A stretch of 63,949 nt of DNA, filler included, from Octopus bimaculoides (GCF_001194135.2; 8 parts of 8 records of this genome joined end to end with filler, not necessarily neighbours in it), one strand, 5' to 3'. Counted from the whole stretch's first letter, positions 7,561 through 16,201 are shown. Program-made: numbers and translations. Notes: a model not told the origin generated them from the letters alone.

Positions 7561-7583
7561 TTAATGGGTAAGGTTGTCAAAAG
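7561..7583 (-). CDS. Probable terminal coding exon of the NXF-like gene ((A)FDNLTH*)
   Basis: Nearest strong acceptor (tttgctttaaacacgttcattctctcag|C). Phase-1 reading stops at TAA 7563-7561. Other acceptors (7440, 7031) also give a stop within a few codons. Confidence 0.4.
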
Positions 7584-7677
7584 CTGAGAGAATGAACGTG
7601 TTTAAAGCAAAGTTGACAACAAAACTCTAAAATTTACTGCATTCTGTTCTTGTTATTGTTTACAATAACATACTCAC

Positions 7678-7736
7678 CATTGTATATAAATGTTTGTGCT
7701 GCTTTCCCGTAGTCCCACTGAGACCATTCCAAACAC
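7678..7736 (-). CDS. 59-nt exon completing the TAP-C/UBA domain: (W)CLEWSQWDYGKAAQTFIYN
   Basis: Acceptor ttttatccaacag|G and donor AATG|GTGAGT. Phase-2 entry matches the donor at 12321. Aligns without gaps to NXF1 [16 protein letters not shown]. Confidence 0.8.
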
Positions 7737-9915
7737 CTGTTGGATAAAATCTTAGATTAATTCACAATAAAAAAAAATAAAACTAATTCAACAAGAAAAA
7801 GCAATTAAGCATTGTCACCAAGTCATTGATGTACAAGGAGCCATACATCTATAACTGACCAACAACTGAGAACTAACAGATACAGTGAAATATCAGTGAT
7901 CAGGCCATAGATATAGATATACACCACAGTCTATAATTGACCAGCAACTGAATTCTCACATGTACAATGAATTAGAGTATTATAGACCAAGTTTTAGATG
8001 TACATTAAATGAATTTGCTGTTTAATAATATATCTAATATTACAAAATAATAATACATAACTTTATATAATTGTACAAATAAATAATTTAGTGGTTCAAT
8101 GACACTATCAAAAGAGAATTTATATTTCAATGAAGTGTTATTCTTCTAATTCTGTTCATTAACAAATTAAAAATACCACACTGTTTCTACAGTAATTTTT
8201 TTTTCACCTGTGTGTGAGGGAGAGGGAGAGAGAGAGAGAGAGAGAGAAAGAGTGGTCTTAGTCTTTCCAAGTCTGTCTAGACTAGAAGATAGCTATTGCT
8301 AAGTGAGGTCATTGTGTTTAATGCTATGTTTAATACCTGATGGTAAAAGATGAGATTGAAAAATGTCATAGAGAAAAAAAAAAGGGTAAAAGACAGGAAA
8401 TCGAAAACTCAGAGACAAAATACTTGTCTCAATTAAAATAAAAAAGAAATTCTTTTATATTTTTTTACTAGTTTCAATAAATATGTTGGGGTACTGCCTT
8501 CAAAGATTTAGCTAGTCATATTAACTCAAGTACTATTTCAGTCTAGTGCTGATTCCATTGATCTCTTTGTTGAACGGCTAGGTTATTGGACATCAGAAAT
8601 ACATAAACACTGTAGAAATACATTAACAACACTGACAGTCACACAGACACAAGCAAGTATATTGTACATATGCATGTGCATGTGTGTGTGTGTGTGTGTG
8701 TGTGTGTAGGACAGCTGAGCAATTTCCATTTGCCGAATTCTAAAAACTCCGCTTACAATATAGTGGTCACCAAGATTACAGCAGAAAACACTTGCTCCTG
8801 CTTTTCAGTCATTGGTCTGTGGCTATGCTGGAACATCACCTAGTAAGGTTCAGTAAAACAGATTGATCCCAGTATTTATTTTTGTTTAAGCCTGGTACTT
8901 ACTCTATAGGTCACTTTTGCCAAACCACTAAGTTACTGAGATGTAAACAAACCAACACTGCTTGCCAAGTGGTGGTGGAGGACAAACACAAGCACACACA
9001 CACACATATATATATATATGTGTGTATATATATGGCAAGCTTCTTTTTTTTTATGTGCCACCCACACAAGAGCCAGTGGCACATAAAAAAAAAAGAAGCT
9101 TGCCATATATATATACATATATATATATACATATATATATATATATTTCCATCTACCAAATCCACTCAAAAGACTTTGGTTGGCCCAAGGCTATAGTAAA
9201 AGACACTTGCCCAAGGTGCCATGCAGTGGGACTGAACCCAGAACCATGTCGCTGAGAAGCAAACTTCATGGCACATAACCACGACAGTGCATATGTGTAT
9301 GCATGTAGGTGACATGTATAGTGGGAGTGTACATACAAGTGTGGTATAGGCAAGTACTGAATTGGTGTTCAGATTGATCAGATTCTTATATCTTAACTTC
9401 CTAAACTGGTTAAAATGTCTATTTAGTCCATAAGAAAAAGAGTAATTGCAGTAATTCATTTCTATGAGTTATGTACAGCTGTTTCAAACAATCAGTGACT
9501 AGTAAATTATAATGCATATCATGCAAACAAAAATATATAGTGGAGCAGTAATTATACATAAGAAATAAGCAAAAAGAAGTTAACAACTTACATGAAGAAT
9601 GACACTTAAATATCTTCAAGCTGCAACTGTCACATGTTCTTGTTAGAAGGAACAATAGTTCCACCAAGAAATTATTCATGCATTATGCAAGTTGGCAAAA
9701 ATTTTTACACTTATTTTGTTGAGAATAATTACTGGTTTTTATAGGCATATATGCATGTTTGCATAATACCATCAACCAGTCACCAAATCTTTGAAACAGA
9801 TGTACGAGTCTATCTTCATCTTATAATGTCCCATAACTATATGTAACGTTGTATATAAATATATTACTAATCTCTTGCCCATCTTCGGTCTCATTACATA
9901 TAATATATATATATA

Positions 9916-12631: not shown

Positions 12632-12663
<32 letters not shown>

Positions 12664-15600
12664 TTGGTGGTGGTGGTGGTGGTTGTGGATATAAAAATCC
12701 TTGGCCATTATCAAAATACATATCTCCTCCGTAATAATGGGAATCCTTCATGAAACCATAAGTTGGTACTGGTATGTTAGCCATGTCTATTGGTACAAAT
12801 GTTTTACTAGTTGGCATCATGCTGTCCATCTCAGGTAAATAGAAGCCGTGATTAGATTCTTTAATAGTTATTTCGTCCGTTAACGACGCTGTGAAAGGCA
12901 GAGAAGGTACTAAACTGAAGTCAGCTGGTGCATTGTTGCACGTGTTTGAAGGTGCACAGCTCACTGATTGTGTATGCGATTGTCTGTAATTGGAACTGCT
13001 GTGTGGACTGCTGGATTTGTTTTGAACATCACTCAGAGAAGAAGGTGCAGTCTTTTCTGATTCAGATGGATATTCATTCAAAGATTTGTGCTTTGATGAT
13101 TTTGTAGGGTGACATGGTACATCAAAGAAATGATTCTCTTTTGGCTTTGAAGAACTCTCAACAGGTATTATACACAAAGTATATGTCACATTTAAGATTG
13201 GGATTTCATTTAAAAAGTTTTTAAAAAATTGCATTGTTGAAGACTTCAGATAAAACAGCTTGGCTGGAGAAGTATTTAAAAATAAGTCTGATTTTAGAAA
13301 ATTAGTTTTATTTTTTATGCCAAACAAAAGTTCTTTCAAACTGACAGAATTTCCCCACAAGTCTCCAAAATGATTTCTTTTAACTATTGACATTGTTTGT
13401 GAAGTTTCTTTGTTTGCAACATAATTATGCAATGGCTTTGGATCAAATGGTCTCAACTTAGAGGTTTTATCACAAATAGAAAAGTTACAGAAAATTTTTA
13501 AAAACTCTTTATATTTATCTGAAGAGGTAGGATAATTTGGGTCAGTTTTTCCTATATGTAGACATTTTTTTAATTGTTTTCTTATATGTAACCCATTACA
13601 ATGAAAAACAGTTACATGATAATCGATAGTAAATACTCTAGAAATGTTATACGTTTTAATCAAAGAAAAAGTTAGGAATTTTATTTTAGTTTGTTCTACT
13701 GATGAGAAGTATTTGCAGATTATACTCAACATTGATAATCTACTTATTTTATCATGGCCAATACACAGAGATGGATTCAATTGTGTATCAGCACATAATT
13801 GTTCATTTCTTTCTAAATGTAAATTGAAAAATGGAAAATCTAACCACAGCTGAAATCTAATTAATCTGAAACCCATGATACCAAATCTTACACCACTTAT
13901 TGCACATAAACATTGAGTATTATATTTGCAATTGGGTAAAGAACAGTATAGGTCTCTTGAGGAATCATAATCAGTGATAGTATATATTGTAATCAGAGAA
14001 GTGAATAAATTAAACAAACTCTGACTTAAAATTCTCAAATGATTAGCAAATGATAAATATTTTTCATAACTTAAAGAATGTAAAATATCTGAAGGCAACA
14101 TCTCATGTTTGCTGACTATGTCTGATTGATGAACACTTTTCAAAAGATACCTTGTGGCCATAATCATTAACATATTCACATTAAATTTACAGAATTTCAT
14201 GATTTTAATTCTCATATTTAAAAATACATGTTTTATCCCATATTTCCCCCACTCTAAACTCTGTGTAAATTCTTCAAAATAACTTTGTTCCCTTATTCCT
14301 GATTTAATGTATAATTTTGAATAAAAAAAGAGTCCTTGTTGGAAATGTTTATAATTAACAAAAGTAGAATAAAAATTCTCAACAGAAGCCTTTGTGTTTA
14401 AAAGAATGTTTGTTGTAAGAAATGCATGCTTGAATGGATCAAAAGGAAACACAACTGATGATTTCCATATAATCATCAGCACAGCTGCCTTTTCAAATAA
14501 TTTAATTTGCAAATAAATATGTGAACAATCAAACAGATTCTTACAAAGATAAATCTCACTGAATGATTTATAAGCTTTGGTATGAAGACTATTTCTAAAA
14601 CAGAACTTTCTGTGTTTAATAGCTACTGGTGACAACCTTAGTTTTATAGCTTTGAATATATTTGCTATCAGCAAATATATTTTGGCTTCGGCACCATCAG
14701 ACACTGCCAAAACAGCAATAAAATCTATTAGTTTGGTTAACTTATAACAAAATAGCTGTCTGAAAAAGGAAAGATATCTAGCTTTTATATCCATTATTAA
14801 TGCTGGTGAGGCCAATATATTACTTGGAATTAAAGGCTTAAAGTGCTCCTTTGGTACCTTCGATGATGAATGGTTTCCTTCAGAGAACCTATCACATAAA
14901 TTTCCTACACCATTATATTGAGTACACACGTCAAATGAAGAGACATTATCTTTTAAATATCGCAACATTTGATGCATCTTACAAATGCCATTACCAACAA
15001 ATATATGTGCAGTCACCTTGGGCCTAGGAAAATCTTCAAAAGCACCAAAAGCTTCTGGCAAGATTATCACTAATAGGTAATTCAATTCATTCACATTAAG
15101 ACTGGTGATTATAATTAGATCTGTCATTAAAAAAAACATTTTCCAGGAGGAATTACCCAATTTCAAATTTAATTTTTGAAGCTGGATCGTTTTCATAACT
15201 AAAGATTGCAAATACTCGATGTAAAATCCATCCCAAAATTCAATTACATTTTCCTGTGCTTTTAAAAGGAAAGGCACATGAAATTCTAAATTGATCAATA
15301 ATATGATAATTACTTCCAAAGTTGGTTGACAGAAATCTAATATTATTTCAAAAATATCATTGACAAACACTGCAAAACAAGCAATGCAGTGTTTTGTGTT
15401 GTTTAATTCATAGATAGGTACACTGTTCCTATATTTGTGGCACAGATTCAATTCATCAATATTAATTGGTAAAGAGTCAATTATTTTAGAGTATTTCTGT
15501 GCTAAACATTGAAAACATTCCAGGTCAGGCTGATTACATATCTCGTCTTTATTACCAACTAAAAATTTAGTATCTTTTTCAGGAAATCCTTGTGAGTTAA

Positions 15601-16201
15601 ATGTTTTAAACATTAGATTTCTTTTGGTCTTTAGCCATATTTTTAATCTGAAATAATTTAGGTGCTTTGCAGTGAGAATTCTCCTGAAGTGCAACTTTTT
15701 GTGGGAGAAATTTAGTTTTGGGTGCAAAACGTATACAGAGCCAGAAGTACACAAAACAGTGAAGCCCACAGAATAGAAAACAATGTCTGGTGTAGAAACT
15801 TTGTCTTCTTGGAATATCTGACAAAATGATTTGCTAATCACTTCAAACTGGTAACCATTGCCCGTTTTCATGTTCCTAGCTGCATATTCTGTGCAGCCAT
15901 TTCTTTTGGGTATATAGATTTTATTGCTACATTTTCTAACCAGATCATTTTTCAAACTGTAATGCACAGGACTGTACATACTTATGTGTCTGACTTGCTT
16001 TTTAGGGAAGTAAATTGTATCAGACCTAAAAGGCTTCCTAATGGCATGCTTTCGAAGTATATTGACACACATCCTACAATTGAGGCATTTACTATGCACA
16101 GCAAGTTTTGATAGCTTCAAAGGTAAATGTTTCACTTCTGGTATTCTTCCAGTTGAATGCTTCAGTTGTTTTAAATCTATAGCATCTTGGCTTTCAAACA
16201 T
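12321..16201 (-). CDS. Main coding exon (1293 codons + 2 nt) of a divergent NXF/TAP-family (nuclear RNA export factor-like) gene
   Basis: Only long non-repetitive ORF in the window, with an in-frame TAA at 16235-16237 upstream. It ends in a strong donor AAATG|GTAAGA at 12321/12320. Motifs resembling human NXF1: SVP...FVND (aa260-282 vs SVP...FVED); LKAQENV and LQKLNL (LRR); GNGIC..Y..F..NG (aa403-431 vs GNSLC..Y..F..DG, LRR cap); IKARYLSFFRQLF and SDGA (NTF2-like); RRTMVEQFATFTNYPFEFSK (first half of TAP-C). Coding status is near certain; family assignment rests mainly on TAP-C. Confidence 0.85.

Follow-up and report, generated by a model that had tools for sequence, protein, structure and literature searches.

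A protein-coding gene of octopods that ends in a UBA-like domain of the NXF (TAP-C) type

The gene LOC106884196 of Octopus bimaculoides probably encodes a chimera, in which a 3' fragment of an NXF gene has been joined to an unrelated intronless ORF, rather than a complete NXF protein that has drifted. It lies in a window of 63,949 nucleotides (the whole stretch of DNA that was analysed, filler included), and is a real protein-coding gene that was already present in public annotation; its probable restriction to octopods hinges on how well protein libraries cover squid, cuttlefish and nautilus. A first-pass annotation had proposed a hidden NXF/TAP paralogue at this position. The NXF-type TAP-C tail and the splice of that proposal stand; its hidden status and its NXF body domains are not supported, and the TAP-C domain is incomplete.

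Gene structure, annotation and constraint

The coding sequence consists of one giant intronless exon (amino acids 1-1294), a 59-nt exon, and a tiny terminal exon drawn from three alternatives, each contributing only 2 to 5 residues. Its features are as follows.

12321..16201, minus strand: coding exon 1 (3,881 nt), with the ATG at 16201; codons 1-1293 and the first two nucleotides of codon 1294 (TG|G), ending at the donor AAATG|GTAAGA
15962..16201, minus strand: N-terminal conserved block, amino acids 1-80, which holds CLNCRMC; identity to Argonauta 70%, with a dN/dS of 0.26
15002..15481, minus strand: conserved block, hydrophobic and probably helical, amino acids 241-400; 57-75% identical to Argonauta, with no family match
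12602..13108, minus strand: low-complexity region rich in Ser, Pro, Ala and aromatic residues, amino acids 1032-1200, from the alignment, its composition read from the sequence
12425..12454, minus strand: basic cluster RRKTKRYQRK, amino acids 1250-1259, kept in Argonauta; candidate nuclear localisation signal
12321..12373, minus strand: N-terminal portion of the TAP-C/UBA-like domain, amino acids 1277-1294, covering helix alpha1 and the beginning of alpha2 and encoded where exon 1 ends, from Pfam TAP_C and AF2 helices
7737..12320, minus strand: intron 1 (4,584 nt, GT..AG, phase 2), in the codon preceding a conserved Cys; contains dispersed repeats
7678..7736, minus strand: coding exon 2, 59 nt long, translated as (W)CLEWSQWDYGKAAQTFIYN with one further nucleotide; completes alpha2 and supplies the QWD loop as well as alpha3
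7433..7440, minus strand: coding part of an alternative terminal exon (acag|GTATCTAA) that appends Gly-Ile-stop; the resulting isoform of 1315 aa is also the one annotated in O. sinensis
7015..7031, minus strand: coding portion of another alternative terminal exon (tcag|AAATAGAATTCTTTTGA) that appends EIEFF-stop, for an isoform of 1318 aa
about 8.8 kb outside the window's left edge: terminal exon that ends the 1316-aa isoform with DFS-stop

The 1294-codon ORF noticed earlier (16201..12317, minus strand) is borne out, and the probability of such an open run by chance is ~1e-43 when each codon has a 0.074 probability of being a stop at the local base composition. The other five frames across its span contain 56 to 126 stops. 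The donor in the last codon of the ORF is likewise confirmed, at 12321/12320, and its predicted junction with the exon at 7736..7678, with the translation ...RRTMVEQFATFTNYPFEFSKWCLEWSQWDYGKAAQTFIYN, agrees with the RefSeq splice and with conservation of the splice sites in Argonauta. The identical splice is carried by RefSeq XP_014790925/927/928 and by O. sinensis XP_036367523. The acceptor of exon 2 reads ...aacag|GTGTTTGG, and the donor after it is AATG|gtgagt. The domain-splitting intron, put at 4.6 kb, and the product, put at ~1,320 amino acids and amounting to ~1,316, were also predicted correctly. By contrast, the gene is not one that ORF-based annotation misses, since the RefSeq models of LOC106884196 (three isoforms of 1315-1318 aa) and UniProt A0A0L8I4U0, named "TAP-C domain-containing protein", already carry the splice and the domain name, respectively. 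The product of exon 1 is 100% identical to RefSeq XP_014790927.1, and every isoform stops 2 to 5 amino acids past IYN.

Orthologues are found in O. sinensis and Argonauta hians, where exon 1 is also intact; single orthologous copies of equal gene structure were found in three octopod species. O. bimaculoides and O. sinensis are 2.0% apart in the exon and ~6.5% plus indels apart in the intron, and the length of a poly-Pro/poly-Ala tract (12632-12685) varies within the genus. Between Octopus and Argonauta, dN/dS is 0.52 (bootstrap CI 0.45-0.61) at a dS of ~0.73, ranging from 0.26 for amino acids 1-80 and 0.18 for amino acids 1201-1294 to 0.76-0.90 for amino acids 401-720. The last 68 codons differ by 19 synonymous and 4 non-synonymous changes, and in exon 2 of Argonauta both splice sites are kept and all seven base differences (7/7) are synonymous. 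As judged from these alignments, the protein evolves fast, with constrained blocks at amino acids 1-80, at amino acids 241-400 and at the C-terminus. The earlier expectation of a rapidly diverging protein that is not an ordinary NXF1 agrees with a dN/dS of ~0.5 and with the lack of NXF body domains described below.

The same data bear on whether the locus is non-functional, being an ORF that is open by chance or in decay, or an artefact of annotation, with the TAP-C match as a pseudogene relic. The high dN/dS in the middle of the protein, the variable terminal exons and the truncated domain would fit such a relic, but a frame of this length is not expected by chance, it stays open over 1209-1294 codons in three species despite a dS of ~0.73, dN/dS is significantly below 1 overall and 0.18-0.26 at the two ends, and exon 2 has changed only synonymously between conserved splice sites. 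The comparative data effectively refute this explanation, to which we assign a negligible probability.

An NXF-type UBA-like tail

The spliced C-terminus matches Pfam TAP_C (PF03943) with E=7.8e-8 and 32.2 bits (range 27.4-32.2 bits), above the curated cut-off of 21.3 bits, in agreement with the TAP-C/UBA domain first read by eye in the spliced product. No other UBA-clan family was reported for the tail by the Pfam search. The noted identity of 13/37 to residues 567-603 of human NXF1, W594 and D595 included, is also correct. In AF2 models of the last 83 amino acids, helices occupy positions 34-52, 56-65 and 70-80, with a mean pLDDT of 63 and a core of 70-85. The best Foldseek matches of this model are the Tap UBA structures 1oai and 1go5, followed by other UBA domains, all of them non-significant (E of 0.3 or worse, rmsd ~6 Å). 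From sequence and prediction together, the chain probably ends in a UBA-like domain of ~40 residues with three helices, belonging to the TAP-C (NXF) type.

The domain is incomplete, however. The Pfam match spans amino acids 1277-1310 and profile positions 2-35 of 49, helix alpha4 is missing from all isoforms, and an alpha4-like exon (GKIPEVAF in NXF) was not found within 26 kb downstream. A domain lacking alpha4 might neither fold nor bind like TAP-C. In human NXF1, W594/D595 and A602 are residues of the UBA pocket that serve FG-nucleoporin binding, which the substitution A602D reportedly blocks. The octopod tail retains the corresponding W1301 and D1302 and the pocket residue Cys1295, and has Thr1309 at the position equivalent to A602. 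The location of this Cys within the NXF UBA pocket is established (PMC4498709).

The structure of the gene also links the tail to NXF. In octopus, a phase-2 intron interrupts the TAP-C domain within the codon that precedes the Cys (AAA TG|gt...ag|G TGT), and introns in the same phase and codon are found in NXF1 of a bird (CAG AA|gt...ag|G TGC) and a stingray (CAG AA|gt...ag|A TGT), the two NXF1 genes compared, both of them from vertebrates. The position of the next intron differs by 2 nt, in that octopus exon 2 is 59 nt long and the penultimate exon of NXF1 is 61 nt long; the two exons are homologues by this comparison. Because the octopus tail and vertebrate NXF1 have the position and phase of this intron in common, we infer that the gene inherited its 3' end from an NXF ancestor.

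The body of the protein and its origin

Outside the tail, ~1,230 residues are without detectable relatives. In a set of four orthologues and isoforms, the Pfam families Tap-RNA_bind (PF09162), LRR_NXF1-5 (PF24048), NTF2 (PF02136) and NXF_NTF2 (PF22602) have no match even when E is allowed to reach 10. A PDB profile search matched solely the UBA part of NXF1 chains, even with the 508-aa chain 6e5u, and in hhalign comparisons with human NXF1 and with an NXF profile of 20 sequences, the alignments were confined to 38-39 TAP-C columns. An LRR-cap (amino acids 403-431), LRR, NTF2-like and weak RRM motifs, once read in NXF order, are therefore undetected by all three methods, and the LRR-cap has no statistical support. 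When a profile of amino acids 1-1031 was compared with 1.84e9 representative proteins, it matched only Octopus, Argonauta and one spurious translated tandem repeat, and a word-indexed search of 5.8e9 proteins again returned the Octopus and Argonauta clusters; restriction to octopods is to be read relative to the coverage of squid, cuttlefish and nautilus proteomes in these libraries.

These results can be weighed against the possibility of a complete NXF paralogue (RRM-LRR-NTF2L-UBA) whose body has doubled in size and diverged past recognition, and which would be a specialist in export or silencing in the manner of Drosophila Nxf2 or Nxf3. Such a paralogue would account for a TAP-C domain above the Pfam threshold and for an intron whose position and phase are common with NXF1, a dN/dS of ~0.5 could wipe out the remaining similarity, and NXF domains are known to hold their folds at 15-29% identity (PMC4498709). 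AF2 neither showed nor ruled against such folds in the body (pLDDT 25.9 for amino acids 1-1031, with an alignment only 3 sequences deep), so an LRR or NTF2-like fold may be kept there under an eroded sequence. On the other hand, no NXF body family appears even at E up to 10, whereas every vertebrate NXF1 listed carries Tap-RNA_bind, LRR_NXF1-5 and NTF2/NXF_NTF2; profile-profile alignment recovers TAP-C columns alone; and ~200 amino acids of low complexity separate body and UBA, in place of the short linker between NTF2L and UBA in NXF. The NXF1 listing yielded vertebrate entries only, with no separate canonical NXF1 of octopus among them. The pattern of introns also argues against descent of the whole gene from NXF. 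Intron loss mediated by reverse transcriptase preferentially takes 3' introns, yet here the 3'-most introns alone persist, the two 3'-most of NXF following an intronless 3.9-kb body, the reverse of the usual bias. For this reason we favour a chimera, and regard a complete paralogue as unlikely.

A special case of the chimera would be a domesticated mobile-element or viral ORF that gained NXF 3' exons. The body is large, intronless, AT-rich and fast-evolving, no cellular homologues were found, and the flanking introns are rich in interspersed repeats. Against this origin, Pfam matches in the protein include neither a reverse transcriptase, integrase, transposase or capsid nor any other domain of mobile elements, there is no second copy of the body in the window or among the 1.84e9 representatives, and three octopod species have single orthologous copies of equal structure. 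We therefore consider it very improbable.

Possible function and comparison with known systems

If the protein is a chimera of this kind, the basic cluster just ahead of the domain would direct it to the nucleus, where the NXF-derived UBA-like module would serve for docking. FG-nucleoporins are possible partners, given that the tail retains both its QWD loop and its pocket Cys; by analogy with the binding of the Drosophila Nxf2 UBA to Panoramix, the partner might instead be a helix of another protein. Since no NTF2-like (NXT1-binding), LRR or RRM domain is detectable, work as an export receptor of the NXF1 type is not expected. A more specific proposal, which we consider a long shot, is that octopods independently built a nuclear factor by grafting the UBA 3' end of NXF onto a large, fast-evolving orphan protein, for use at the nuclear pore or in a complex for co-transcriptional silencing or transposon control. 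If so, it would be a lophotrochozoan parallel to the co-option of NXF proteins in Drosophila (Nxf2-Panoramix and Nxf3-Bootlegger), achieved through domain capture and not through duplication of a whole gene.

The general mRNA export receptor NXF1/TAP (Mex67) resembles the octopod protein in its TAP-C domain (PF03943; 33-34% identity over 38-39 residues), in the W-D of its NWD loop and the pocket Cys, and in the phase-2 intron before this Cys and the size of the penultimate exon (61 nt, versus 59 nt in octopods). The octopod protein differs in having no detectable RRM/Tap-RNA_bind, LRR or NTF2-like domain and no alpha4, and in its twofold size, single-exon body, occurrence in octopods only and Thr at the A602 equivalent.

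Drosophila Nxf2, which acts with Panoramix and Nxt1 in the complex called SFiNX, PICTS or Pandas, was the analogy drawn in the first-pass annotation, which suggested that the octopod protein may have a germline, piRNA or silencing role, and is also lineage-specific and fast-evolving with an NXF-type UBA. Its UBA serves protein-protein docking rather than FG binding, through a Panoramix-binding surface formed by alpha1, alpha3 and alpha4 (10.1101/609693). However, Nxf2 has a full NXF layout, with a duplicated RRM-LRR unit, an Nxt1-bound NTF2L and a four-helix UBA, whereas the octopod protein has neither detectable body domains nor alpha4.

Generic three-helix UBA and UBA-like domains (p47, FAF1, UBALD/FAM100B, TNK1 and Dcn1) are modules of similar size (~40 residues) and are the next-best, non-significant Foldseek matches after Tap UBA, but the sequence and gene structure of the octopod tail point specifically to the TAP-C family. 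Finally, the gene has features of orphan genes and of chimeras formed by exon capture: amino acids 1-1031 have no homologue beyond one order, selection is relaxed (dN/dS ~0.5), and novel sequence carries a recognisable domain taken from an older gene. The orphan part (~1,230 aa) far exceeds typical young genes in length, and it is not very young, since its frame has been open since the split of Octopus and Argonauta (dS ~0.73).

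Gene structure, splicing and annotation

A minus-strand ORF of 1294 unbroken codons starts with an ATG at 16201 and is closed by a TAA at 12319-12317. Given the window's G+C content of 33-34%, which corresponds to a stop probability of 0.074 per codon, the chance of an open run of this length is ~1e-43, and the remaining five frames contain 56-126 stops across the same span. The final codon and stop of the ORF (TGG TAA) overlap a consensus splice donor, AAATG/GTAAGA (slashes mark splice sites). A polypyrimidine tract and acceptor (aacag/) are found 4,584 nucleotides downstream of this donor, and are followed by a 59-nucleotide exon with its own donor, AATG/gtgagt. 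The exons and alternative endings of the gene are as follows.

Features of LOC106884196 (window positions)
16201-12321, minus strand: exon 1
12320-7737, minus strand: intron 1
7736-7678, minus strand: exon 2
7440-7433, minus strand: terminal exon, acag/GTATCTAA, alternative ending
7031-7015, minus strand: terminal exon, tcag/AAATAGAATTCTTTTGA, alternative ending
~8.8 kb past the window's left edge (34991-35001 of L001, a locus record reaching past that edge): distal terminal exon, alternative ending

Translation of the joined exons gives ...FRRTMVEQFATFTNYPFEFSKW-CLEWSQWDYGKAAQTFIYN, and the 80-residue joined tail matches the Pfam TAP_C family (PF03943) with E=7.8e-8 and 32.2 bits (curated cut-off 21.3). 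The tail also matches solved structures of the human TAP/NXF1 UBA domain (1go5, 1oai, 1jkg and 6e5u) with E ~1e-3. The sequence observations of the first-pass annotation were thus largely right: its exon coordinates, joined translation, 13/37 identity to NXF1 and conserved W-D pair are all correct.

Evidence for the splice comes from comparison of three octopods, O. bimaculoides, O. sinensis and Argonauta hians. The O. sinensis gene has the same structure as that of O. bimaculoides. Exon 1 of Argonauta ends in an identical AAATG/GTAAGA, and ~2 kb downstream of this donor is tttcag/GTGTCTGG...CAATG/GTAATA. All seven base differences between the Octopus and Argonauta 59-nucleotide exons are synonymous, and in the final 68 codons 19 are changed synonymously and 4 non-synonymously. 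Such a pattern is expected of an exon that is spliced, translated and under strong purifying selection.

It had been proposed that the gene is hidden and that annotation would miss its diagnostic domain. This proposal is wrong, because RefSeq and UniProt already contain both the gene model and its TAP-C domain. RefSeq XP_014790927.1 ("uncharacterized protein LOC106884196", O. bimaculoides, 1316 amino acids) matches the ORF with 100% identity, and a TAP_C match is already precomputed for it. The 90% cluster of this protein includes two further isoforms (1315 and 1318 amino acids), an O. sinensis orthologue (XP_036367523, 1310 amino acids, 96% identical) and UniProt A0A0L8I4U0, titled "TAP-C domain-containing protein". 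A more distant orthologue, GAB1604533.1 (1271 amino acids, ~46% identical), is present in Argonauta hians. Literature searches on the locus name, on TAP-C in cephalopods and on NXF in Octopus returned nothing relevant, and we found no paper mentioning the gene, whose part of the window maps to CM046616.1.

Assembly gaps (runs of N) are present at 16628-16909 and 20343-20352. The former is ~430 nucleotides upstream of the start codon, within an extended (TA)n/(TATG)n microsatellite, so that part of the gene's promoter and 5' UTR region is missing from the assembly. Downstream of exon 2, 154-nucleotide segments at 2291-2444 and 4560-4713 form an inverted pair, 88% complementary and 2.1 kb apart, and three 66-nucleotide tandem units occupy 2385-2582. 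The inverted segments resemble a single interspersed repeat present twice, once in each orientation; an additional copy, 90% identical, is outside the window in the gene's 3' intron (L001 32407-32623). Direct repeats that are 72-76% identical are dispersed within intron 1 and in the region 5' to the gene (8879-9009, 17291-17421 and 18191-18321; also 9200-9282 and 18363-18445), and look like SINE-type elements. Short ORFs at 4733-5212 (minus strand) and 19978-20200 (plus strand) have translations that by eye resemble fragments of LINE-type retrotransposon proteins, and Pfam gave no significant match to either. ARAGORN and Rfam scans of the window detected no tRNA or RNA family.

The body of the protein and its rate of evolution

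Canonical NXF1 carries Tap-RNA_bind, LRR_NXF1-5, NTF2/NXF_NTF2 and TAP_C domains, whereas only TAP_C was detected in the octopod proteins. Pfam searches of these proteins at E-values up to 10 gave no other family, and an NCBIfam scan gave no match. When a profile of five octopod sequences was searched against PDB, the only region matched was the UBA of NXF1 chains, with no LRR or NTF2L match, and this was the case even for 6e5u, a 508-residue chain that contains LRR and NTF2L. With hhalign, just 38-39 TAP-C columns were aligned to either human NXF1 or a profile of 20 vertebrate NXF sequences. The earlier description of an LRR-cap, LRR, NTF2-like and RRM motifs in NXF order therefore finds no support in Pfam, the PDB profile search or hhalign. 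In a search with an approximate human NXF1 sequence (96% identical to a primate NXF1), the best 120 matches listed were all vertebrate, and an octopus NXF1 was not among the matches listed.

An exhaustive HMMER search of 1.84 billion representative proteins with a profile of residues 1-1031 gave no genuine match beyond Octopus and Argonauta. The sole non-octopod match (P0006) was spurious, being a translated tandem repeat that matched in 17 stretches. As judged by these sequence searches, ~1,230 residues have no detectable homologue within the libraries searched, which is a new result, and the gene is restricted to octopods in the same libraries. An AF2 model of residues 1-1031, based on an alignment of 3 sequences, has a pLDDT of 25.9, too low to be informative, and a cryptic fold may be present in this part. 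We considered a transmembrane reading of the hydrophobic block at residues 272-381 and rejected it as the main explanation: the segments contain Asp and Glu and barely clear the hydropathy threshold.

In NXF proteins a short linker precedes the UBA, whereas in the octopod protein the body is separated from the UBA by ~200 residues of low-complexity sequence rich in Ser, Pro, Ala and aromatic residues. A poly-Pro/poly-Ala tract (PPPPPPTPAAAAAAAAA; window 12632-12685, residues 1173-1190) lies within the coding exon. It has 4 residues fewer in O. sinensis, is mostly absent in Argonauta, and is thus a coding microsatellite of variable length.

Comparison of exon 1 between Octopus and Argonauta by the Nei-Gojobori method gives dS 0.73, dN 0.38 and dN/dS 0.52 (bootstrap CI 0.45-0.61). 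The ratio is 0.26 for residues 1-80, 0.18 for residues 1201-1294 and 0.43-0.90 in between. Identity to Argonauta peaks at residues 1-80 (70%), 241-400 (57-75%) and 1201-1313 (62-94%). Between O. bimaculoides and O. sinensis, dN/dS is 0.56, and the exon differs by 2.0%, versus ~6.5% mismatches and many indels in the intron. On these dN/dS and identity profiles, the gene is judged to be coding and constrained, yet fast-evolving, with three conserved modules.

A shared intron and the truncated TAP-C domain

The NXF1 side of our intron comparison consists of two vertebrate loci, from gannet and stingray. The TAP-C regions of the three genes read as follows.

Exon junctions in TAP-C regions
Gannet (Morus bassanus) NXF1: ...TGG TCC CAG AA/gtgagt...ccccag/G TGC CTG CAG GAC
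Stingray (Hemitrygon akajei) NXF1: ...TCA CAG AA/gtgagt...ttgcag/A TGT CTG CAG GAC
Octopus: ...AGC AAA TG/gtaaga...aacag/G TGT TTG GAA

In all three, a phase-2 intron interrupts the codon directly before the conserved Cys. Because intron position and phase coincide inside a 40-residue domain, the comparison is strong evidence for common descent of the TAP-C exons in the octopod gene and NXF1. The shared position and phase also mean that the tail cannot have come from a processed (retroposed) copy. The proposal of a divergent NXF paralogue thus holds for the ancestry of the tail; in an architectural sense it is not demonstrable, since the sequence searches detected no NXF body domains. The next exon is 61 nucleotides in both vertebrate genes, ending in phase 0 after ...LK, whereas in octopods it is 59 nucleotides and ends in phase 1, with the donor 2 nucleotides earlier.

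The three O. bimaculoides isoforms diverge only after ...QTFIYN, continuing as GI-stop, EIEFF-stop or DFS-stop, and each ending comes from a separate terminal exon. None of these exons encodes helix alpha4 of TAP-C, and for this reason the Pfam match reaches no further than position 35 of the 49 in the profile. The alpha4 sequence of human NXF1 is GEIPEVAF; scans for a GKIPEVAF-like pattern over 26 kb of downstream sequence from O. bimaculoides and 10 kb from O. sinensis revealed no relic of a lost exon. The terminal exons add just 2-5 codons each, a trivial C-terminal tag. Their 3' UTRs differ, which may hint at mRNA-level regulation. The Argonauta gene model (record L003) runs 43 residues past ...FIYN (EPSSFGCPPTQG...), using exons as far as 15 kb downstream; Octopus lacks any equivalent of these added residues, which may be an artefact of annotation.

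An AF2 model of the last 83 residues has helices at 34-52, 56-65 and 70-80. Its mean pLDDT is 63, with values of 70-85 in the core. In the Foldseek ranking for this model, the Tap UBA structures 1oai and 1go5 come at the top, followed by ordinary UBA domains. With E-values of at least 0.3 and rmsd of ~6 Å these matches are not significant, and the ranking is therefore consistent with a UBA fold without proving it.

Origin and possible function

The body contains no introns, which were either lost or never present, and the two 3'-most NXF introns are kept. Intron loss mediated by reverse transcriptase preferentially removes 3' introns. The octopod arrangement is the reverse of this pattern, which supports a chimera over an eroded NXF, and we infer that the gene is probably a chimera. 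Overall, the locus is an already-annotated gene and not a demonstrable NXF paralogue architecturally. What is new is the evidence from the shared intron, the consistent loss of alpha4, the ~1,230 homologue-free residues and the rate profile along the protein. Its significance is below the initial estimate, since the model and TAP-C domain were already public, an NXF-like body is unsupported, and the germline, piRNA, silencing or export roles first proposed are hypothetical. If the chimera reading is true, the mRNA export receptor has a TAP-C/UBA module that can be separated from the rest of NXF and put to use on an unrelated scaffold, an architecture not found elsewhere in our searches. The gene would then be a clean case of a chimeric, lineage-restricted cephalopod gene whose origin is partly datable and traceable through a shared intron.

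A conserved basic cluster just before the domain, RRKTKRYQRK (residues 1250-1259), is a plausible nuclear localisation signal, and in our preferred reading the protein would be a nuclear scaffold that docks through its UBA-like module, with FG-nucleoporins or a partner helix as candidate partners. A classical export-receptor role has a low probability, because neither an NXT1-binding NTF2-like domain nor an RNA-binding unit was detected. The module retains the Trp and Asp of the NWD loop, as well as the Cys that corresponds to an FG-pocket residue; in C. thermophilum Mex67, that Cys is located in the FG pocket (PMC4498709). The points against binding to FG-nucleoporins are Thr at the A602-equivalent position and the lack of a C-terminal segment packing on alpha1. 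The UBA of Drosophila Nxf2 has a closed FG pocket and binds a Panoramix helix via alpha1, alpha3 and alpha4 (10.1101/609693), whereas the octopod module is built without alpha4.
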